Source of the DNA: Pocillopora damicornis
Taxonomy: Eukaryota
DNA: 64,000 nucleotides
Assembly (NCBI RefSeq): GCF_003704095.1
Contig: NW_020843386.1
Span: forward strand, 1-64,000
Direction of reading: 5' to 3'
Below the pieces are notes generated by a model. It did not search any database and was not told the origin of the DNA. It saw only the letters and a list, made by a program, of their open reading frames with translations. Position numbers and translations under genes: made by a program. The stretch's first letter is position 1, and each line of letters starts with the position of its first letter. Shown here in pieces: positions 1-64,000 of this stretch.

Positions 1-1077
1 GTTTTACTTAATAGACTTACAGAACAAGGTCACCTAAGTCTTCCCTACTAAGAATGCCAAAAATAATTTTGACTCAATACTTTTCATCATCTTCTTGATG
101 TAAATTTTATCTTATCATCCAGTTTCATTTTCATAATCATGACTNNNNNNNNNNNNNNNNNNNNNNNNNNNNNNNNNNNNNNNNNNNNNNNNNNNNNNNN
201 NNNNNNNNNNNNNNNNNNNNNNNNNNNNNNNNNNNNNNNNNNNNNNNNNNNNNNNNNNNNNNNNNNNNNNNNNNNNNNNNNNNNNNNNNNNNNNNNNNNN
301 NNNNNNNNNNNNNNNNNNNNNNNNNNNNNNNNNNNNNNNNNNNNNNNNNNNNNNNNNNNNNNNNNNNNNNNNNNNNNNNNNNNNNNNNNNNNNNNNNNNN
401 NNNNNNNNNNNNNNNNNNNNNNNNNNNNNNNNNNNNNNNNNNNNNNNNNNNNNNNNNNNNNNNNNNNNNNNNNNNNNNNNNNNNNNNNNNNNNNNNNNNN
501 NNNNNNNNNNNNNNNNNNNNNNNNNNNNNNNNNCTATAACAGAGCTACTGAATGAGTTGTAACAAAAGTCAACTCGGCAAAATCACAGCTTAAAAAAAAC
601 CTGACCAGATATGATATACAAATGCCTTATTTTAACCCTTTAACTCCNNNNNNNNNNTTGTTAATTCTCCCCTGTAGCTGCTACACATTTCCTTGTAAAT
701 TACTTATGAGAACTTGGTGCAAGATCTACAGTAGATAGTAGCTTCTACCTGAAAAGTTTGAATATTCTCATTACCTGTTTGCTGAATAATGTATGGATAT
801 TACTGGGNNNNNNNNNNNNNNNNNNNNNNNNNNNNNNNNAAGGGTTAATAATGTTTTTAAGATCAACCTTTAGAAGATTTTCTCCTTCAGGACAAATGAT
901 AAAATCACCGCTCCTATCACTAATACCCGTACAAAAAAGATCATGCAGATGTCACACAAGCTTTTAAGAGTCATGCATCAAAGGANNNNNNNNNNCCCAA
1001 CAAATACCAGCATTTGTCGTTTGAATTCTTGTCATGGCAATGGTTTTCTTTCAACTTTCTTGTAAAAAAAGGATGTA
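1..1077 (-). pseudogene. Degenerate direct duplicate of the USP2-like 3' UTR and the end of its last exon
   Basis: 1-144 matches about 16501-16640 and 545-1077 matches about 16738-17066. The YILFYEK..stop segment at about 1032-1077 has substitutions and an extra A. Confidence 0.8.
632..848. mobile_element. piggyBac-type MITE with TTAA target-site duplication
   Basis: TTAA-CCCTTTAACTCC...AGGG-TTAA. The paralogous site at 16834-16837 is empty and has a single TTAA. Confidence 0.8.
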
Positions 1078-1430
1078 AATGTGATTGAATTTTTGGCTCC
1101 CTTAATTACAGGGCTCAGCTTATGAATATAGCCTTGAATGACTGGAATTGTGAGAGCAAATATAAACATTATCAAAAGGTAGCATTTATCACTTGAGTAT
1201 ATCTCTAATATTCAGTTGTAATGCATATTTCATAACAAAAATCAATCAATTTGAAAAGAAAAAAANNNNNNNNNNNNNNNNNNNNNNNNNNNNNNNNNNN
1301 NNNNNNNNNNNNNNNNNNNNNNNNNNNNNNNNNNNNNNNNNNNNNNNNNNNNNNNNNNNNNNNNNNNNNNNNNNNNNNNNNNNNNNNNNNNNNNNNNNNN
1401 NNNNNNNNNNNNNNNNNNNNNNNNNNNNNN

Positions 1431-2783
1431 AATTTACAGCTATGAGTTATGGCAAAGTAGTATAAAAGTAACTAACTTTGAATTTAAAGGCTCCTGATCC
1501 ATTGTGAAGAGAGAATATCTGATAATAAATAAAAAGTATTCACCCTCCATTAAATTTCAATCTCTTTTAAACCATGCGCTGCCATTGTTGAGATCAGGAA
1601 ACAATTAATTTCCTTTGGGGAATGAAATTTGTCTTTGAGACACAAAAAAATTCCTTTTGGATAATAATTTTAATAATTAAAAAACATTCAGCAGTGTTAA
1701 CATAGAAACTACTTAACATAACTAACACACTTTCAGCAACACAACTTACTTTAAAACAATAAGATTTCTATTCACCATGCAATATCAANNNNNNNNNNNN
1801 NNNNNNNNNNNNNNNNNNNNNNNNNNNNNNNNNNNNNNNNNNNNNNNNNNNNNNNNNNNNNNNNNNNNNNNNNNNNNNNNNNNNNNNNNNNNNNNNNNNN
1901 NNNNNNNNNNNNNNNNNNNNNNNNNNNNNNNNNNNNNNNNNNNNNNNNNNNNNNNNNNNNNNNNNNNNNNNNNNNNNNNNNNNNNNTCCATAATTCTGGG
2001 TCCGGTTGTTCAAAGGTCGATTAGTGCTAACCCAAGGTTAAATTTTAATCTGGTATCTTTATTCCTTTTTTAAATGCCTTTTTGGGATAGTTTCCTGTGT
2101 CCTTTTTAGAGCATCAATATACTCATATTCTAGACAAAAAGAATTCGACTGGATTTTCTTGTAAAAGCTATCAGATCTGAAACCAGATTTCACACTAACC
2201 CTGTATTATCTNNNNNNNNNNNNNNNNNNNNNNNNNNNNNNNNNNNNNNNNNNNNNNNNNNNNNNNNNNNNNNNNNNNNNNNNNNNNNNNNNNNNNNNNN
2301 NNNNNNNNNNNCAATCAATTTGAAAAGAAAAAAGAGAAAAAGCAAAAGAAAGGAAACAAATTGATTAAAAAGTACACATTTGTCATCTACAGTGAGTTTT
2401 AAATTTCTTACCTGTCAAAGAAGGATCTTGATTTTTACTTGATACACTTTGAGCCTCGTTTTTTCCTGAAAATTGAAGATTCAATAATTTAGATTAATTA
2501 ATAAGGATGCCTGTTTTAATTATATTATAAATTTAGAGCTATGAGTTATGGTAAAGCAGTAGTATAAAAGTGACTTACTTTGAATATGAAGGCTCCTGAT
2601 CCATTGTGAGGAGAGAATATCTGATAATAAATAAAAAGTATTCATCCTCCATTAGATTTGAATCTCTTTTAATTAAAACATGCTGCTATTGTTGAGATCA
2701 GGAAACAAGGAATTTCCTTTGGCAAATGAAACTTGTCTTTTGAGACACAAAACTCTCTTTTGAATAATAATTTTAATAATTAA
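1431..2783 (+). repeat. Local direct duplication (about 1431-1682 versus 2530-2783)
   Basis: Shared aattta.agctatgagttatgg...ggctcctgatccattgtg...ataataattttaataattaaaa; also 1242-1265 versus 2312-2333. Confidence 0.8.
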
Positions 2784-5700
2784 AATGCCTTTTCACACAA
2801 GTAATTCACACCCTAAGGCTACAACAGATGTCTTTGATTTAGACTCTCAGATGTTTCTGCAAACAAGCACCCAGTACATGTATAAGTTCATTTCACCATT
2901 GCGAACTGAATTCCCAGTTTTCTGGGAATTTCTAGGAATTCCCAAAAATTCCCAACTATACAAATAAGCTCTGATTTGAAAAGCTTGGAATTACTGAGAA
3001 TTTATGGGAAAGGAAGACTCCAGTTTTGTGAGGACTTGGAATTCCTAGGAGTTGTCAGCTATACAAACTACCAACAATTTAAGAAGGGTGGAATTCTTGA
3101 GAATTTCTAAGAATTGAATTTGAGGCAATTTAAATGCCCTGAATTTCAAATAAATTCCAAGAAATTCTCAATATCTTGTGTGAAGGTTTTAAAACAAGGA
3201 GTAATTTTAGAGGCTTAAAACTTCACCTCAATAAAAGGTATGCTATACAAAATTTACCAAAAGATACACATACATGTATATGTATGTAACTTAAAAATCA
3301 TGAGATTTATTATTCAAATGTAAATCTTTACATTAATATGGATTTTCTCATAAAGCAGCAGTCAATTGTGTTAAATGCAAATTGCCAATTAATCCAATGT
3401 ACTCATATCTATGATTTGCTTTCTAACCTCAAAAGACTCTAGGATTCCATGATCATAAAAGTTTTTAATTGCAATGCAAAATGTCTTATGTCCACAGATG
3501 TGCCAAAATCATCAAACATTCATCAGCTGTTCCTTGGTACACAACTTCCACATGTGTAACAATAATTATATTGCTATCTACACTCAAAGAACTTTGTTAG
3601 ATATGAATATAAGTTACTTCCCTAATCAACATTACTGGTTCCCTTTGTTAGAGAACCTTGGACATGCAAGCTCAGTTGCCTCAAACACTGTCAAGAGACT
3701 TTTTGNNNNNNNNNNNNNNNNNNNNNNNNNNNNNNNNNNNNNNNNNNNNNNNNNNNNNNNNNNNNNNNNNNNNNNNNNNNNNNNNNNNNNNNNNNNNNNN
3801 NNNNNNNNNNNNNNNNNNNNNNNNNNNNNNNNNNNNNNNNNNNNNNNNNNNNNNNNNNNNNNNNNNNNNNNNNNNNNNNNNNNNNNNNNNNNNNNNNNNN
3901 NNNNNNNNNNNNNNNNNNNNNNNNNNNNNNNNNNNNNNNNNNNNNNNNNNNNNNTTTGAGAAATAACACCTTTTAAATGACTTCTTCATTTTACTTTATT
4001 TGAAACTCTGGTCTGAATATATTTTTAAAACAAGACTTGTTAGTAGTGAGAAGTACAAACCAAGTTTCTTTTCATAACTTAATTTCTTAAATGTCACAAT
4101 CACTGGATCTCCTAAAAATATTATTTCTTTTTATTTTTGGTGCAAAATATATTAAGTCCTTCCCTGTATTCAAGTGAAAAGGGTAAGTTACACTTCATTG
4201 ATAACAGCTCTAAAGTTTATTTGTTGTTCTTCTCTGAGTCAGCTGCCTACAAAATTGTTTTATACTATGTAGGTCTGGTATAAAATTTTACTTGTGGTAT
4301 AAAAATTTTACTTGTGGTATAAAATGACAACCTTGTGTCTTCGACTTTGAGTGTTTTCTTGTGATTGTTTGGGCAATAGATGTAGATGATATTTGTGAAG
4401 GATACAATTGGCTTGTCAAAGAGCACAAACGAATTGGACAGTATACTTTTATTGTGTTGTTGCTATCTCAGGTTATTGTTGATCATTTGAAGTACTCACT
4501 CTCCTGTGAGTGTTTTTCAGAGTTTCAACTGTACTGCTAGTGCAATTTACTTCCAATTTTAGCAAGAAATTAAAGTTTACATAAGTTTATGTTTTGTTTC
4601 AATGTTTTGATGCGAATCCCAACCAGCAGGGCTGATTACCAAAACAAAAAGGGTCAATGTCGAGTAAAGAAAAGTAAGACAATGCTAGTACCAGAGATAT
4701 GGTTGTTACACCAAAGAGCTTGTTGGAAATGGAGGAATAATTATGGATTTTAATGGAGTAAGGAAAAGTCTTTTCAATCATTAGTCTTAGAAATATCATC
4801 AGATATGATCAATGATGTAGAGAAACTGTGAATTAAAACAAGTACTAGTTTGGGCTTCCAGTTGTAATATGAATAGTTAAATAAATCAATTATTTCCCAA
4901 TCAAAATCATATTCATTTTATCATTTCAATTGCACAACAAAAAATTGTATACACTCTTTGCAACCTTATTCTCTAAACCCTTAAATTACAAGAGTTATGT
5001 GACTATTCTATGGTCTGATAAGACTCTTATTACATGCTAAACAACAAAGAACCAGTAGGGCTGATATTTAACAGTGAAGATAACAAACAAAATATTTCCA
5101 AATCTTTTTTTTCCTGGGAACAAGACTAAATGAGGTCAGATTAAACTAATGTGGGGAGGTTCGTAGATCTCTTTAGGAAAAAAGATGAATTACATCTATC
5201 AGATTTTAGAGAAATGAGACATATCTCAAAAGGGGACTTTGACATAGTATATTCTGTGGTAATGGGCATCAGCTTGGATGCCTATTTAAGGAAATTTATA
5301 GTTTTCAAGTCAGGGGTTTAGCTGTGCCAATTTTATGGCAGACAAATCATATCTCAGACACTTAAGAAATTTTATAGCTCTCACCGGAAGCTCAAACACT
5401 CCTAGGGAACATAACAATATTTCATCTGATAACTCTTCATATTTTTTTCCAATGAAATTTGGACAAAACTTTCAAAGACTTTATTGGTAATTTTACAGTT
5501 GCATGTAGCATAGGCTAATCAAGGCAAGTTTCCTAGAGAGAACAAAAGATTGATAATTTAAGCTTCTGGAACTAATGACAATCTCTTGAATACCAGCTTG
5601 CCACAGTAAATGTCGCATCTATCCATTCTGGCAAAAGTATCAACTATGTGTAGTGGGGTCACTTTATATCTTCCTAAACAGCCGAGTACATACAAGTTAA

Positions 5701-56505: not shown

Positions 56506-57441
56506 TCAAACAGTGTGACTGACAATACTGACTGAATTTCTCTTGACCTTCGGGAAAATTGTTGTAATTGGGAGCGTGCTTCTGAACGCCTTTATCCGCA
56601 CAGAGTATAAGATAGGATTTAACACTGAAGAAAAACAAGCCAGGGTAGTTGTACCTAGCCATAACTGAGTGTCGGCCCAAAATTTTGGCGCTGAAAGGTG
56701 AATCGCCGAATCAATCAAACCTGGAAGCCAACAAAGTGCAAACGAGCCCGTCACCATAGCAACAGTCATGACGGCTTTGTATTCTTTCAGGAAACAGGGT
56801 TGGTGCTGATTTGAGCGGGTTTCTTGCACTTTTATCAATCTTTTCTGCCTGTTGGCTTCCTTGAAGATTCGCACGTAGAAATAGGAAATAAACACAAATG
56901 GAATACCAAAGATGCCCATAAAGAGGGCAAAATGGCCCTGCCCTGATATGCCACAGTTGTTTTTCAGTGATATTAATGATACTAGAAGGGATGAGGTCCA
57001 AATTACTGCGATGATTTTTCCGCACTTTCGTGGGGTAAGTCTACTTTGGTATTGAAATGGTGCAGTGACACCTACATAGCGGTCGTAACTTAACGCAAGA
57101 AGGTTTAGCGAGGAAGCAGACAGTGTCAAAACCACAATCACCGTGAACAAGTTATGCACGTTTTCCTCGATGAAGTGTGCCTTTTGAAGGAGTTTTAAAC
57201 ACCACACTGGCACACCCAATGTTGCAATCAGCAAATCGGCAACGGCGAGGGAAACAATCCAATAGTTTGTCATGGATCGTAGCGCAGGTTTGTGACAAAT
57301 CACCAAAATGACCAAAATGTTTAAAAAAATCGCTGCAATTCCACAGACTCCCGACAGCGAAAGGATAGTGATCAGAGAACTTGTTGAGACAGTGAAAGAG
57401 TGTTGCGAGCAATCCTTGTGAAAAATTGTTGAATTTTTCAT
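56506..57441 (-). CDS. Single-exon class A (rhodopsin-like) GPCR, amine/adenosine-receptor-like, 311 aa
   Basis: Intact ORF with seven hydrophobic segments and class A motifs: N in TM1, SLAVADL, DRY, W in TM4, FALCWLP, NPILY. The ligand cannot be assigned. Confidence 0.9.
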   Translation of the reverse strand: MKNSTIFHKDCSQHSFTVSTSSLITILSLSGVCGIAAIFLNILVILVICHKPALRSMTNYWIVSLAVADLLIATLGVPVWCLKLLQKAHFIEENVHNLFTVIVVLTLSASSLNLLALSYDRYVGVTAPFQYQSRLTPRKCGKIIAVIWTSSLLVSLISLKNNCGISGQGHFALFMGIFGIPFVFISYFYVRIFKEANRQKRLIKVQETRSNQHQPCFLKEYKAVMTVAMVTGSFALCWLPGLIDSAIHLSAPKFWADTQLWLGTTTLACFSSVLNPILYSVRIKAFRSTLPITTIFPKVKRNSVSIVSHTV

Positions 57442-59763
57442 AATAGGAGCTCCTGGAAGCTATACCTTTCAGTGATTTCTACCTTGATTATCTTACTCTG
57501 CTCACGGAAAAGCTTCACTATCAGTTCGCGCAAAGAAGTAATTTCTGCTTTGTCATCGGTAAACGTAAGAATTGTCTAGCAAGAAAAAACTGAACTTGAT
57601 CACTGCATCGAAAAAACAACAAGAAGTTTCACTGATTTCGCGCCTCTTAAAAATTCCTCAATCTTTTGAGAGGCGATCTTCCTTCTTTTGTTTCGGAGGA
57701 TCGTTCGATTTTCAATGTTAGAAGCTTGTTGTGCCGCACATTAGGACTTCCACATATCCGGAAGCCACTTTAAAACCAACACAAATGACGCTGGAAAAAC
57801 AAATGACACCTGCCAAACTAGACAAAGCATGATCTATTTCTTTTATAAATTATGCATATTACTTTTCTATAAGGTTACTCTCCGTCGAAGATTATCATTT
57901 GAATATCAATAACTAGCCATTCTTTTTTACAATATTTAATTCGTTTTCACAAATAAAACCTCTAGTTCTATGATGCCAGCGGGAATGTTTTTGACGCTCT
58001 TCGAATCACATAAATTTATGTTTTTTTTCCTTATCGAGATACTTATGCACTTAATTAACCAAGGATATATTAAAGTTATTAGGTTCCGGGGCAAATGCAA
58101 ACAACAAGATCGCTGTCTAGTCCATTTACGTGAAATTTTCGCATTGTGGACAATTCTGAGGTTAAAACACACGTTTTTAGAACATCACTTTCAAGATTTG
58201 AGTACGTTAATGACTTCTTCGGCAAAATTGATGATAGTGAAATCTCAATTTTGTTAAGTTTTTAATGAAACTTTCGTTATTGACTTCTGAACGAGACAGT
58301 AGAAAAGTCCATTAAGAAAATTATCAGTAGTCATCTACGCTAAGTGGAACGATTCCTTTCAATATCCGTGTGAAGTACACAAGTTCGGATCGTATAAGTT
58401 TGAAAGGGTTTTCATACGCTAAATTGCATGTGTGTAGTAACAGCCGCAAGCACTGATACAACAACGAAATATTGCGGTAAAACGAACAATAGAAAACCCT
58501 TTTGGCGAAAAACAAAAAAAAAATGGGAAAGAAAAGAATAACAAACAAAATAAAGCAGCGATAGTTCCAAATTTACATAGAGCAAAGGAAAAGACTCATG
58601 AAATGATTTATTTCTTCAGTTGTGTAGCTGCGCGTCGATAATTAAAGTAGTAATGTAATTTTTTTTAAATGAACGAAAAGTTCTGCTATTTCAGTTAAAA
58701 AACTAACATGCAAGTTACTCCTGCATTTTTAGGTTGACTTGTGACAAATTTAGAGGGCGCTTGGGCTTTAGAAAGTCTAAATTTGAAAGGTAAGAGCGTC
58801 GGATATCAATTCACAATCATTTGAAATTACTCCGCACTCGTTTTTGAAAATAAGGACCTGGTAATGATCTGTGATATAGGTTCTTTGCGCGGATGCATCA
58901 AATTGAAACACCTCAAGATTTTCAGTTTTAAAATCGATGTTTATGGTGTTAAATGTTTTACCAGCTGCATCACGACAGCTGGTTCCCTCGGTGCTGTTTT
59001 CAAACCTATATAACTCAGATATCGGGTATTCTATTTCGCAGTATTTTTGGGACGATGTTATTCGTTTTCTACCCTAACATCAGTATGCATATTCTCCACA
59101 CTGTTCTCTATACATTTTCTAAGGTACCGACAAGGAGAATTTATCCAACAATCAAGACCTTCTTTAGTTGGTGATCATTTCCTTTATTCTCATGACCATG
59201 ATGTGGGATTCAAGGCTGATATTGTAGGGAGAAACTAGATGCTGGTCACTCTTTGGGGTCATAAGGTTAAGATACATCATTTGCAAAACATTAACTTGGT
59301 TTCTTTTAGCTGTAATAAACCAAAACTTTTGAATACGGTCAACAAAACAAAAACAAAAAAAGGAAAAACAAGCTGTCCAGAAGACAGTTTATCAAGACAA
59401 ATCTCAACTGATGTTATTCATTTGCATAATAAAATAGACTAGTATTTGAGAGGCTTTGTCAGATTCTAGTTTTTAATATTTCAAGCTTTTCAACCAAAAA
59501 AATGAAAGAGCATGCTATGCACAGTATTCATCAAAGCTGGGTGACTTAAAAAATAATGTAATGAGGACTAACTCCCATTAAGTAGCTCCCCCCCATGATA
59601 ACCTCTGCACTTCAGTTTCTCTTTCCCCCCCCCCCTCATTCTGAAAACCCTGTAAATTGATACCCCATGAGCCCTTCCCCACCCTCCTTGGGGAAGTGCT
59701 TATCACAGCATTAACAGTAGATCCATGGAAATTAATCAAAACCAACAGGTCCCTGTTGTTAAT

Positions 59764-61436
59764 TTACACAAGGGTTCCTTGAGAGGGGATCCCCTTGGGG
59801 GTCAACTCTGTCAGTTTTTTCAGTTGTAACTTTCTCAGTTCTTCCTCTGATGGTAACAAAGGAGGCAGATCATTTCCAACAAATTCCACAATGCCCATCT
59901 TGGCCATATCTCTCTTTCGTGGTGGTATTTTGTATACTCTTGTGTAACCATTCACTTGATTTTCGTATCGCGGTAAGAGATGCCCAAACACCTTTGGTAT
60001 CAAATTTTTCTTCTGTTAAAAAAAGGAATACAGTGTTAAAGACCATCACAGAGTTTGATACAATTCTTCTGCAAATGTATTCATCCAACGAATTCAAAAC
60101 CAAATGAATAAAGGGTGTAAGTTTCTAAAGCATGTGTAGTGGTATCAACTGAGTTGAAAACATAAATTGACCACTGTTAAGAGTTTAAAGGCTGACATTT
60201 CAAGCTTTAGCCCTTCATCAGAGCAATTGACAAAGAATTAAAAACCACTTTGTAACGCACTGTAAACAGACACCATATCAGTTTGTTTCCAGCATTTCTA
60301 GACCATTTCAAGTTTTTTTTCTGCAACACTGTAACCTGTTAAAGGTCTAACAGCCCTATGTTAAGTGTAAATTAGAGACACATACTGTAATCCAACTGTT
60401 AATAGTTTCTTCATCTCCCACTTTAGCAAGATCAATCATCTGAAATTAAAATTCGATACAAGTTACTCACATACCCCATTTGCTATGAGCAACAACAAAA
60501 AATGAGACTACTTGGATCCAGAGGTGCATTTGGCCCCATTCACCATAGACTACAAGCAGTCCCTCCTTTCCAGTGAAGTCTCTCACACAAATCCAATAAC
60601 TCAGCAAAAAAATTGATGCCAAGAGTTCCATGAGGCATTCTAAAGTGAATTTTATTAGGCCTGATTTTTTGTGACTTTATGGGAAAGACTATTGAAGAAA
60701 GATGGACGGTTAGTAGTCTAGATTCACCAAGTTCAACTTGAACTTCAAAACTTATGCCTGCATGGTTGCAGTTTTTCCTCTTGGTTTTCTTGCTGCCCTA
60801 TGCAATATTTTGATCCTGAGATGTTAATTAACCCTCCACTCCCGAGATCTCATTAATAATTCTCCTTACTGTCTATACAATTTTTATTATGGTAATTCAA
60901 ATAATTACCCAATTGATATTTTTCTTTATTCTCATCGCTTCTCTGAGAGATATTGTATTGAAATTGTAAGGAGAAATTCTCTCTTGGTCACTCATGGGAG
61001 TCATAGGGTTAAGAGACCTCCGCATGCTCTTGCATACTCTAAACATACCGCGAAAGACATGGGTGTCTGCTAAAAGATTTACACTTTGAGAAATACTTTG
61101 TTTGAATGATCAGAGACAGAAATAATTGCAAGATTAGCGAGCTTTCATAGACCCCATGGAGGAAAAACACACACACATCACAGTAAAATGGGAGAATTGA
61201 GGAGAACCTGGAGATTGACAAGGTTTCATTTCCCTGGTATTCACATTATGTACCGCGTGGATACCTACTCTTTCAGCAACTCGAGATAGATCATGGCATT
61301 TGTTGAGCGTTGTCTCTATCCTTTCATATTGCACAAGTGCAGTGATGAGTTTTTTATAAATATGCTTTCTCTTTTCCTTATTCTTCGGTTTGAATTTCAG
61401 CAGATTCTCCAATGGCCGTGTCCTGATGGCCGCCAT
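59764..61436 (-). CDS. MRPL17: Mitochondrial ribosomal protein L17 (bL17m), canonical-looking paralog A, about 156 aa
   Basis: Exons (minus): 61269-61436, 60386-60439, 59764-60012, phase 0. LITALVQYERIETT..AERMIDLAK.G..WITKKNLIPKVF..L.PRY....GYTR...IP.R..D.AKM..VE..GN.LPPL aligns with bL17/MRPL17. Confidence 0.9.
60828..61012. mobile_element. piggyBac-type MITE in MRPL17-A intron 1
   Basis: ttaa-ccctccactccc...gggagtcataggg-ttaa. Confidence 0.75.
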
Positions 61437-61547
61437 CTTGACAACTTGAAAACTCAGCCAGCGCATTCTATTTTCAATAAATCCGCTGGGCATACAAAAC
61501 GTGGTCATGAAATTGCTGAGCAGCCAGGCGATTTCCACACGATAAAG
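61437..61547. promoter_or_regulatory. 111-bp bidirectional promoter region between the two MRPL17 paralogs
   Basis: Divergent ATGs at 61436 (-) and 61548 (+), each within an AAGATGGC (YY1-type) context. Confidence 0.65.
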
Positions 61548-63651
61548 ATGGCTTCCATGTTACTGAGAGTAGCCGGTGAAGGAACATTCCTTAGATCTCT
61601 GGTTCCATGCGTGAATTTAATACCAGTGCGTTTTAGGGTGCGAAGAAAAATGCCATCAAAGATAAGAAACAACCCTTTTGTTCAAAGACGCACGGATTTC
61701 ATTAAAAAACTTGTGTTAGCTCTGGTACAACACGAACGGATTCAAACTACAGATTGGAAGGCTCAGCAGTTGAAGAAATATGCCGAACTGGTAAGGGTAA
61801 AGGTAGTGCGTTTAATTAGGTGCGATTTTAACCATTTCTTAGGATTGGTTAAGTTTGACTTTTCGAGGTTACCGCATTTCCCACCCCACTCTACTCCCCC
61901 ATCTCAGTTTCCATTTTCTCCCCACCCCTGCTGTATAACCCTAGCCAGCAATGATTGAACCTAGGTTCCTAGGTTCTCCAGGGGTCAGTGAATCAACCAA
62001 TTGGATCATCATGTCTCCCACAGCAGCACTTTGGACAAGACCAACATTTAAATTCTCCTCACAGTAATACTGCTGAATCACTTATCAGGATAGTGAGATT
62101 AAAGGGAATGATCACCAACCTAAGAGGCTTTGATTGATAAAAAAATTCTCCCTATCAGTACCAGAGAAAATGTATGGAGGAGAGTGTGGATGTTGATGTC
62201 AGGATGTGAGGGGGTGAAAGCTTTAAAGCAAAGCTTATCAAACTATTTTGTCACTATAGGACTTGAGTGTGGTTCCACATTAAGTAAAATAGAATTAATT
62301 TTTTATGTTCTTTCTTTTAGATCTTTATGATGTGATAAAATGCCTTCCAACATTAGGATACTGGTGCTAAATCAATAATTTTATTATTACTTATTATTTA
62401 TTATTATTGAGTTGTTGTTTTTTTTGGTATGTTGTTTTTAGCTTGTCATGTTGTCACTGAGACGTCGTCCACCACCTGATCTGGACATGATTGAGGATGG
62501 GTTTGTTCTTACTGAGGAAGAATCTGAGCAAAGAAGGCTTACAAGGCGCATTATAAATAGAAGAAGCAAAAAAGTGATTTTACCTGTACCAGACCTAAGT
62601 GAAGAAGAGTATGTTCAAAGATGTAAAGAAGAGGCTTCAAATATGTTGCTTGGGGTGAGAAAGAAAATATTCAATTTGTTTATTTATTTTTAAAGTAGTA
62701 CAGGTATTTTAGTGCTAAAATCCTGGAGTTTTGTTTCTTCTTTCTTCTTCTGATGTCCAACTGTTTTAGTCCTAGAGTGACCAAAAAAAAATTCTTTATT
62801 CTTGTCACTTGTCTGCTTGAGGTTGTATTGATTTTGTAGGAGAAACTCTTGTCTTGGCATTCATGAGAATAAAAGGGTTAACAGGTTTAAGCTTGAAATG
62901 AAGATTTAATGGCTAAGCAGATAGTGCCCTGGACTCTAGTTCTTGCGCTCAAAATTTGAGTGCTGGCTGTGTCAACATGTTGTGTTTCCAGGAAAGACTA
63001 TGATTTCACTGATAGATGGCTCATGGTTGTTTCTATCCCAGTGTGAAGCTTTGCATTCTTTAACCCTTTCACTCCTAAGATCTCATTAGTAATTCTCCTT
63101 ACTGTCTACCTTACAATTTTTATGATGTAAGCGATGAGAATTTGGTATTGGATCAACTAATAATCCCTTGATTGATATTTTTCTTTATTCTCACTACTTG
63201 TCTGCTTGATATTGTATTGTTATTGTAAGGAGAAATTCTGCTTTGGTCACTCATGGGAGCAAAAGGTTCTCAGTACCCAGAAGCTTTAATTAGTGGTCTC
63301 TTAACTTGTTCTTATCAGGATTGTATTTCTTTTTAACAGAACGAAGAGGCACTAGAAAAACTTTACACAACACTTAAGGAACGATATCAAGAAAGATATG
63401 GCAATTTTGTGACAATTCAAACAATTCCCAACCCTCCCCACTCCCCTTACCCAAACATGGCATATGTTGAGTTAGTGGGGAACTCCCTACCCCCACTCCC
63501 CAGGTTGCCTGTGGTCAAGGGAGGGAATTGGGTTGTTTACAACAGAGATGATTATGAAGATGATAACAAGACTGTGGTGAAGAATTTCTTCAAGTGGATG
63601 GAACGAAGGAAAGTAATAAAAGAAAATGTAAAATCAAGGAAAAGACAATAA
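61548..63651 (+). CDS. MRPL17: Mitochondrial ribosomal protein L17-like, divergent paralog B, about 255 aa
   Basis: Exons 61548-61790, 62442-62654, 63340-63651, phase 0. LVLALVQHERIQTT..KA..L..YAE, KLY..L.ERY..R.G.F, MAYVELVGNSLPPLP. Arg-rich N-terminal extension resembling a mitochondrial presequence and an insertion of about 50 aa in exon 2. Confidence 0.82.
63060..63268. mobile_element. piggyBac-type MITE in MRPL17-B intron 2
   Basis: ttaaccctttcactcc...gggagcaaaaggtt with the family consensus body. Confidence 0.75.
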
Positions 63652-64000
63652 ACAGGTGTAAATATAATAAAAACATAAATATTTTGACATATCATTGTAT
63701 GTGAGTGGCTTTAAAACATCCGAAATAAAATACATCTGGATGGAAGTAGATCATGTACCCTTGATTGTGAAGAAGCTGATAATGGACTGTTACCCTCAAC
63801 ATTGGTAGTGTGGCTCAATAATATGATAATCAGTTGACACTTTGATAATTTTCTTTGTGTTTCCTTTTTGCAATTTATGTAATTCTGCTGAAGTTAGTCA
63901 GCTGTAATGAAAAAGCAGTATGTTACAGTATTGGTCATTGATAAAAAGATGTCAAAAATATTTCTACTGTGGGTCTGAATTATTTTCTAGTTATCACAAA

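Follow-up and report, generated by a model that had tools for sequence, protein, structure and literature searches.

Why does a stony coral keep, side by side and on opposite strands, two very different genes for a protein that is found once in solved mitoribosomes? The question is raised by a 64,000-nucleotide stretch of Pocillopora damicornis DNA (NCBI RefSeq assembly GCF_003704095.1, contig NW_020843386.1, positions 1 to 64,000; referred to as the window), near whose end two genes with the L17 domain, called here gene A and gene B, lie head-to-head with 111 bp between their start codons. On the evidence below, gene A is assigned as the ordinary, canonical gene of mitoribosomal protein bL17m (MRPL17) and gene B as a diverged L17-domain paralog. 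The latter is best described as a lineage-specific copy of a bacterial-type mitoribosomal protein, with a putative function. Stony corals transcribe the pair divergently from a conserved spacer that measures 103-113 bp. Part of the growth of mitoribosomes in different lineages came from recruiting copies of their own proteins, with cases described from few model organisms. The A/B pair is a candidate for such recruitment across an entire animal phylum. The protein concerned is a universally conserved one of the large subunit, and the genomic signature is unusually clear, consisting of an inverted pair, common introns and a shared conserved promoter.

L17 homology of the two genes

The products of the window were searched exon by exon, and the full-length work was performed with public orthologs that differ by one residue each (P0082 for A and P0064 for B). 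With the Pfam family PF01196 (Ribosomal_L17; curated cut-off 27 bits) the full-length A and B proteins scored 93.4 and 54.6 bits, respectively, both over profile positions 2-97. The corresponding values of single exons were 27.9 bits for A exon 1 (profile 2-31), 41.8 bits for A exon 3 (54-97), 27.3 bits for B exon 1 (2-30) and 19.6 bits for B exon 3 (54-97), the last being below the cut-off; B exon 2 gave no Pfam match when scanned alone. The entire 234-Mb assembly contained three matches to PF01196 only, all at this locus.

The identity between A and B, determined with the near-identical Pocillopora proteins, was 34.8% over 155 aligned residues. The profile-profile alignment of the two families by hhalign resulted in a probability of 99% and an expect value (E) of 3e-18, with 36% identity over 108 columns. 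All significant matches of A exons 1 and 3 and of B in the PDB were bL17 or bL17m chains. The best match of A exon 3 was a human-type bL17m (E 3e-14, 55.9 bits), compared with about 28-34 bits for the equivalent stretch of B. The best PDB matches of B were animal bL17m chains with E values from 2.6e-10 to 2.3e-7. A whole-protein search of the ESM Atlas with B returned only bL17m clusters of nematodes and arthropods (score 0.91) and added nothing to the Pfam result. The identity to bat bL17m was 38.6% for A and 27.5% for B. The possibility that B is the true ortholog of bilaterian bL17m was ruled out because both the scores of A and its identity to bL17m were higher. A sequence-only reading of the window had described the genes as two very different bL17m paralogs, and the 34.8% identity together with the Pfam, PDB and profile-profile matches of both bears this out.

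Compared with the characterised animal bL17m (3j7y_O, 6nu2_O), gene A shares the span of the domain and the GN-LPPL motif that follows it. B differs from these proteins by a presequence-like extension, an insert of about 50 residues and altered signature loops.

Gene structure

The features of the locus were determined from translations, Pfam matches, splice sites and RNA contigs, and are as follows.

59600-59763, minus strand: 3' untranslated region (UTR) of gene A, minimum extent; contigs with A exons continue to 59600-59690
59764-60012, minus strand: gene A exon 3, 82 codons and stop, C-terminal half of the L17 domain (translation, Pfam, RNA joint)
60013-60385, minus strand: gene A intron 2, 373 bp, phase 0, GT..AG (RNA contigs, splice sites)
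60386-60439, minus strand: gene A exon 2, 18 codons (flanking joints in 3 of 4 RNA runs)
60440-61268, minus strand: gene A intron 1, 829 bp, phase 0, GT..AG, with a high-copy repeat at about 60869-61009
61269-61436, minus strand: coding part of gene A exon 1, 56 codons, N-terminal helix of the L17 domain (translation, Pfam)
61429-61439, minus strand: YY1-consensus-like box overlapping the start codon of gene A (shuffle test, alignment of loci)
61437-61547, no strand: 111-bp spacer between the start codons, shared divergent promoter and both 5' UTRs (contig ends, conservation)
61548-61790, plus strand: gene B exon 1, 81 codons, presequence-like N-terminus and N-terminal helix of the L17 domain (translation, Pfam)
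61791-62441, plus strand: gene B intron 1, 651 bp, phase 0, GT..AG (joint in 4 of 4 RNA runs)
62442-62654, plus strand: gene B exon 2, 71 codons, family-specific insert of about 50 residues and the helix preceding the second half of the domain
62655-63339, plus strand: gene B intron 2, 685 bp, phase 0, GT..AG, with a high-copy repeat at about 62984-63265 (4 of 4 RNA runs)
63340-63651, plus strand: gene B exon 3, 103 codons and stop, C-terminal half of the L17 domain and lineage-specific tail
63652-63800, plus strand: 3' UTR of gene B, minimum extent; B contigs end at 63779-63800, the edge of the stretch examined

The predicted products are 156 residues for gene A (56+18+82) and 255 residues for gene B (81+71+103). 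Intron 1 falls in the same column of the protein alignment in both genes (after AER in A and AEL in B), and so does intron 2 (after WIT in A and LLG in B). All four introns are of phase 0 and have GT..AG borders. The arrangement proposed earlier, a head-to-head pair 111 bp apart with intact open reading frames (ORFs) in three exons each, agrees with the coordinates, the translations and the RNA joints; phase-0 introns at equivalent positions, the other structural claim, were recovered in all four cases. The same junctions occur in public gene models: two P. damicornis models contain the three B exon peptides joined without gaps, and the A exons differ from the bL17 model of P. verrucosa by one mismatch in 156 residues.

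The start of B was taken as position 61548, because no RNA contig passes 61445 and the orthologs of 255 residues begin at the same methionine. Two P. damicornis models of greater length (340 and 329 residues), with an upstream start antisense to A exon 1, were rejected as no B contig was found beyond 61445. The frame of B is open for 85 codons upstream of its start (61293-61547, plus strand), antisense through A exon 1, and this in-frame stretch is present letter for letter in two P. damicornis gene models. The N-terminal extensions of the 340- and 329-residue models, which begin in this open frame or at a different upstream start, are probably annotation artefacts.

In the B model of Acropora cervicornis (P0047, 209 residues) the first part of the exon-2 region is absent. 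The same part is present in the Acropora models of 236 residues and in all other B proteins, and the gap is probably due to a mis-called splice site.

Conservation of the pair and its spacer in other corals

A metagenome scan with the B alignment yielded seven loci, which were searched by tblastn with the six exon peptides of the window. In all six loci that cover the region upstream of B (L002-L007), A exon 1 was found on the opposite strand at a distance of 103, 105 or 113 bp. Their identity to the window was 93-95% for A exon 1 and 77-78% for B exon 1. One of them, L006, has the complete set of six exons in unchanged order, and its GT..AG introns are found at equivalent places. The six loci represent perhaps two or three taxa, because the exon-1 proteins of L002-L005 and L007 are near-identical. 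In the genome of Oculina patagonica, A and B have consecutive locus tags on one 34-Mb contig, and in P. verrucosa each lies on a contig of the same size. A fragment of A and a fragment of B on ENA contigs of equal size (899,277; 573,458) give a weak hint of linkage in two further genomes. Restriction of the pair to this one assembly, another outcome that would have refuted the sequence-only reading, is contradicted by the six coral metagenome loci and by the neighbouring locus tags of Oculina.

The spacer of the window is 71% identical to that of L006 or L002, a value reached by none of 500 shuffles; unlike the spacer, four 110-bp control segments from the introns were at shuffle level. A box of 11 bases that overlaps the A start codon (61429-61439) had one match in the window and none in 100 shuffles, and was invariant in all seven aligned loci. 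We take this box, which is partly coding, to be a YY1 consensus. The pair has the features of animal bidirectional-promoter pairs: it is divergent, the gap of 111 bp is below 1 kb, both genes are transcribed, the arrangement is kept in 6 of 6 loci, and the spacer is conserved with its YY1-consensus-like box. The shared spacer should tie the expression of A and B together. As the partners are mutual paralogs, the head-to-head arrangement is attributable to the duplication and not to chance pairing.

The remaining locus, L001, is a 2.9-kb JGI contig. It begins 15 bases before a B-like ORF, so the orientation to A cannot be judged. This ORF (16-741, plus strand, 241 residues) is intronless and convergent with an intronless ORF of 507 residues (1328-2851, minus strand). 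In the tree described below, the B-like protein of L001 is sister to the group that contains Hydra.

Expression and splicing

Parts of the stretch are contained in 22 sequencing runs, 14 of which are recorded as RNA, and contigs of four RNA runs from four studies were compared with positions 59600-63800. As the evidence consists of assembled contigs, it reports on presence and splicing, and not on levels, strands or true ends. Both joints of B (61789/90 to 62441/2 and 62653/4 to 63339/40) were detected in all four runs, and in each of them a single contig carried the three B exons and more than 150 bases of the 3' UTR. The joint of A between 60012 and 60386 was found in 4/4 runs and that between 60439 and 61269 in 3/4. 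In run X1 the A contig runs on into intron 1 (60386-60874, with 60440-60874 retained). In run X6 the A contig extends to 61438 and the B contig to 61445, so that the two mRNAs nearly abut. The public protein P0001, translated from a Logan contig (132 residues, close relative), spans the junction of B exons 2 and 3. One copy being unexpressed, named in the sequence-only reading as an outcome that would overturn it, does not hold, since spliced mRNAs of A and B are present in the same four RNA samples.

The B contig of run X6 has 28 unmatched letters before 61445. A trans-spliced leader at this position was considered and rejected, because no AG precedes 61445 and the 28-letter end is seen in only one of the four runs; the end is probably that of a chimeric contig.

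Selection on both copies

The rates of nonsynonymous (dN) and synonymous (dS) substitution between the window and L006 were determined by the Nei-Gojobori count with our own script. For gene A, dN was 0.071, dS 1.37 and dN/dS 0.051; the corresponding values of gene B were 0.137, 1.44 and 0.095, with dS saturated in both cases. Two single exons gave no dN/dS estimate in this comparison. With L006 and L002, where dS was unsaturated (0.4-0.5) and exon 1 only was compared, the ratios were 0.015 for A and 0.026 for B. The protein identity between Pocillopora and Oculina was 85.9% for A and 79.4% for B, between Pocillopora and Acropora 80.8% and 62.3%, and between Pocillopora and sea anemones 66-67% and 54-56%, respectively. 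Across 21 B sequences 19 columns were invariant, several of them within the insert. The species-pair identities and the dN/dS ratios indicate that B evolves somewhat faster than A yet is clearly constrained. Both genes are under purifying selection by these estimates, and a neutrally evolving copy is at odds with the ratios of about 0.05 (A) and 0.10 (B).

Taxonomic distribution and phylogeny of B

A HMMER search with the exon-3 profile in 1.84 billion representative proteins gave 23 matches at E <= 1e-3, of which 11 were at E <= 1e-10. Ten of these 11 were inspected and all were B-like, P0016 being the remaining one. Five of the twelve weaker matches were inspected (P0021, P0024, P0026, P0029, P0030) and were ordinary L17 proteins without the insert, among them a fragment of a mammalian MRPL17 and a protein from an amoebozoan. 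A length-filtered, word-indexed search with six full-length B queries resulted in 26 matches at E <= 1e-5 among 6472 candidates. Seven of the 26 are named and come from Hydra vulgaris, Nematostella vectensis, Actinia tenebrosa, Oculina patagonica, Desmophyllum pertusum, Clytia hemisphaerica and Acropora cervicornis. Cluster look-ups added B proteins of Pocillopora (3 species), Stylophora, Acropora (3 more), Montipora (2) and Porites (4). Every named B was cnidarian, 19 of the 26 matches carrying no name.

A maximum-likelihood tree was calculated from 31 full-length or nearly full-length proteins (21 B, 6 A and 4 other L17; 233 columns), with ORF fragments omitted. The B proteins formed one clade with support of 100/100 and a stem of 2.22 changes per column, and the A proteins formed one clade with 97/97. 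Within B, the topology reflected the groups Complexa, Robusta and sea anemones, and a group with Hydra, Clytia and all unnamed plankton-derived sequences. Since B is monophyletic across Anthozoa and Hydrozoa, the duplication predates the split of Anthozoa and Medusozoa. Orthologs of A were named in the anthozoans P. verrucosa, Acropora digitifera, Oculina, Actinostola and Exaiptasia (34 matches among 35 candidates, in a search that reaches close relatives only), and both copies were kept in all anthozoans examined.

The data are best described by an inverted DNA-level duplication of bL17m that is, as judged from the introns and the tree, older than the Anthozoa-Medusozoa split and in which both introns were kept. 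Descent of B from bL17m by duplication is indicated by the hhalign probability of 99%, the shared positions and phases of the introns and the adjacent inverted genes. The earlier proposal of an old inverted duplication retained under selection is supported: introns are shared, B is a clade with 100/100, dN/dS is low, the mRNAs are spliced and the pairing is conserved.

Residues that distinguish A and B

In all 16 full-length B proteins the domain is preceded by 36-79 residues with 6-13 Lys/Arg and 0-1 Asp/Glu. By its composition this N-terminal extension looks like a mitochondrial presequence. Gene A has no N-terminal extension. In total, B is about 100 residues longer than the characterised animal bL17m. 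According to the profile-profile alignment, about 53 extra residues of B are inserted after the first helix, ahead of the helix leading into the domain's second half. Within this insert, the residues invariant in 21 B sequences comprise a Pro-Pro-Asp motif, a Gly, a Glu, an Asn-Arg pair and a Cys. The insert encoded by exon 2 matched no Pfam family, no PDB chain below E 0.2 and gave no usable match in the ESM Atlas. The part of B after the presequence is mildly basic, or acidic in some members, with an isoelectric point (pI) of 5.8-9.8.

The signature loops were altered as well. Val replaces the Thr of the GGYTR-type motif in 18 of 19 B proteins, and in 17 of 19 the Ala of the following hairpin has become Pro; B also departs from canonical L17 at conserved Gly, Lys, Arg and Asp positions. 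Conservation was scored over 57 reference columns, defined as those in which at least 3 of 4 non-cnidarian L17 proteins agree, which is a very small reference set. Both copies kept 14 of these columns; a further 17 were retained in A alone and 4 in B alone, and the other 22 in neither copy. A retained 31 of the 57, including the GGYTR-type motif and the basic/acidic hairpin; B retained 18 and did not match the signature loops.

Of the two copies gene A is closer to the canonical form, but it too is derived. In all six A proteins Cys occupies a position held by Ala in the references and in all 19 B proteins, and A is devoid of about 5 residues, including basic ones, that follow the first helix in bat bL17m; B keeps Arg-x-Lys/Arg there. 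The reciprocal pattern of residues in A and B is suggestive of divided labour, within the limits of the very small reference set.

The A-specific Cys is followed by His or preceded by a second Cys, and B has one invariant Cys in the helix after the insert. That these residues bind a metal or cluster, as in some pairs of mammalian mitoribosomal proteins, is pure speculation.

Discussion

The history of the locus is reconstructed as follows. A nuclear bL17m gene was duplicated in inverted orientation, with both introns kept, before Anthozoa and Medusozoa separated. Copy A, with 156 residues, remained the canonical bL17m. Copy B passed through a burst of change that added the presequence-like extension of about 40 residues, the insert of about 50 residues and new residues of the signature loops, and its later rate of change has been about as slow as that of A. 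The B protein is predicted to be imported into mitochondria and may serve there as a lineage-specific partner of the mitoribosome, either an extra structural protein or an assembly factor, off the canonical L17 site. The roles put forward in the sequence-only reading, namely an extra subunit, an assembly-stage placeholder or ribosome heterogeneity, are all candidates for it. We give an even chance to the proposal that B acts with the mitoribosome at a site or stage distinct from that of canonical bL17m, in analogy to the derivation of mL66 and mS40 from bS18m. The early burst, with a new insert and rebuilt loops, followed by slow change argues for a new fixed interaction surface and not for an interchangeable isoform. 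B has stayed beside bL17m under one promoter, which points to the two being required in matched dosage, and the known recruitment of mitoribosomal paralogs (mL66, mS40, mL84) supports B as a mitoribosome-associated paralog. A more specific form of this proposal is tentative and rather doubtful: B may be a stoichiometric, cnidarian-specific new 'mL' protein of the large subunit, linked to A for more than 0.5 billion years for matched amounts, with the ancestral contacts split between the two. If so, the loss of the basic segment and of the conserved Ala in A and of the signature loops in B would mean that both are needed on the same ribosome.

Several points weigh against a separate role of B on the mitoribosome. 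The evidence on B consists here of sequence and RNA contigs. The protein retains the hydrophobic core and 18 of the 57 reference-conserved residues and could thus perhaps occupy the L17 site itself. That B is confined to Cnidaria is indicated by a length-filtered word-indexed search and one HMMER search with the exon-3 profile, in which most matches are nameless. The placement of B relative to the bilaterian proteins is tentative, as the grouping of A with bat bL17m is weak (81/51), the branches are long and only four non-cnidarian references were included. Finally, no hydrozoan A was found, in a search that was confined to close relatives and says nothing on hydrozoans; if hydrozoans have no A, B must be able to serve as bL17m.

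The last point leads to the alternative that B occupies the canonical bL17 site itself, giving A-type and B-type mitoribosomes or replacing A in some lineages. The preserved L17 core (54.6 bits over profile 2-97) and the animal bL17m chains among the best PDB matches would fit such an isoform, and the B protein of Hydra is the one that NCBI names bL17, with no hydrozoan A found by the search among close relatives. Paralogous isoforms are listed for plant mitoribosomal proteins, bL17m included, in PMC6953067. However, the long stem of B, its conserved insert of 50 residues and the changed signature loops are atypical of isoforms that can replace each other. Alternation between stages or tissues does not suit a shared promoter and two mRNAs that occur together in the same four RNA samples, and both copies persist in all anthozoans examined; we consider this explanation unlikely. 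B may otherwise have left the ribosome and taken another job in mitochondria, for example in chaperoning RNA or in regulation, with the L17 fold as its scaffold. The loss of basic residues in the L17 hairpin loop, where Arg and Asp/Ala positions have become Pro, points in this direction, as do the mildly basic to acidic pI of 5.8-9.8 after the presequence and an insert with no detectable relative. In opposition, B lies close to bL17m and shares its promoter in a conserved arrangement, which suggests that dosage or function ties it to the ribosome, and B contains no other domain; a role off the ribosome is considered improbable. The reading of B as a degenerating or silent duplicate, or as an assembly artefact, is refuted by the results and retains hardly any probability: apart from the score of B exon 3 alone, which is below the Pfam cut-off, nothing favours it, whereas spliced B mRNA was found in 4/4 RNA runs, dN/dS was 0.03-0.10, B is intact in many cnidarian genera and the pair recurs in independent metagenome contigs.

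The proposed separate role of B has precedents. To our knowledge, paralogs of the mL66, mS40 and mL84 type are not head-to-head neighbours of their parent gene. In the trio bS18m/mS40/mL66 (MRPS18C/B/A of mammals) and in mL84 of euglenozoans, a duplicated bacterial-type protein became a new structural protein, which is the model proposed for B. According to a 2026 preprint (bioRxiv 10.64898/2026.10.06.756942), bS18m has the paralogs mL66 and mS40, and bL9m has the paralog mL84. These proteins have been seen in ribosome structures; B is known from sequence and transcripts.

For each mitochondrial bL17m sequence the number of PDB entries equals the number of chains, in agreement with one copy per ribosome in solved structures. 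The statement of the sequence-only reading that characterised mitoribosomes carry one bL17m stands for the solved structures listed; at the level of genes it needs qualification, as Arabidopsis has two. These, AT5G09770 and AT5G64650, are listed as isoforms in PMC6953067. The Arabidopsis pair is alike in consisting of two nuclear bL17m genes, listed there as isoforms of one protein. The coral copies, in contrast, are only about 35% identical and of unlike architecture.

No description of two L17-type genes in cnidarians was found in the literature within reach, supplements and one image table being outside it. This agrees with the earlier statement that none was known, and the proteins themselves are already in public databases. 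The main text of the preprint cited above has no occurrence of bL17, Nematostella or cnidaria; its Table 1, an image entitled 'List of paralogs', and its supplementary tables, which were not covered, might bear on novelty. The labels of B vary among species: 'bL17' in Hydra, 'predicted protein' in Nematostella, '54S L17' in Desmophyllum, '39S L17' in A. cervicornis and 'bL17m-like' in Montipora foliosa. In Pocillopora, Stylophora, Acropora, Porites and Actinia, B is labelled 'uncharacterized', to which UniRef often adds 'bL17m'. With labels so inconsistent, orthology tables can confuse A and B.

Neighbouring sequence

An Rfam scan of positions 58000-64000 detected no RNA family. A high-copy interspersed repeat is present in A intron 1 (60869-61009) and B intron 2 (62984-63265) and also at about 59050-59240. 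In the repeat regions the word depth of RNA contigs was approximately 10,000-56,000, compared with tens elsewhere, and some contigs join both intron copies. The repeat looks like an element of the short interspersed nuclear element (SINE) or miniature inverted-repeat transposable element (MITE) type, with widespread transcription in this coral.

An ORF of 311 residues in a single exon (56506-57441, minus strand), situated about 2.3 kb past the 3' end of gene A, resembles a rhodopsin-class receptor. It contains DRY-like and NPxxY-like motifs, which we take to be those of this receptor class.

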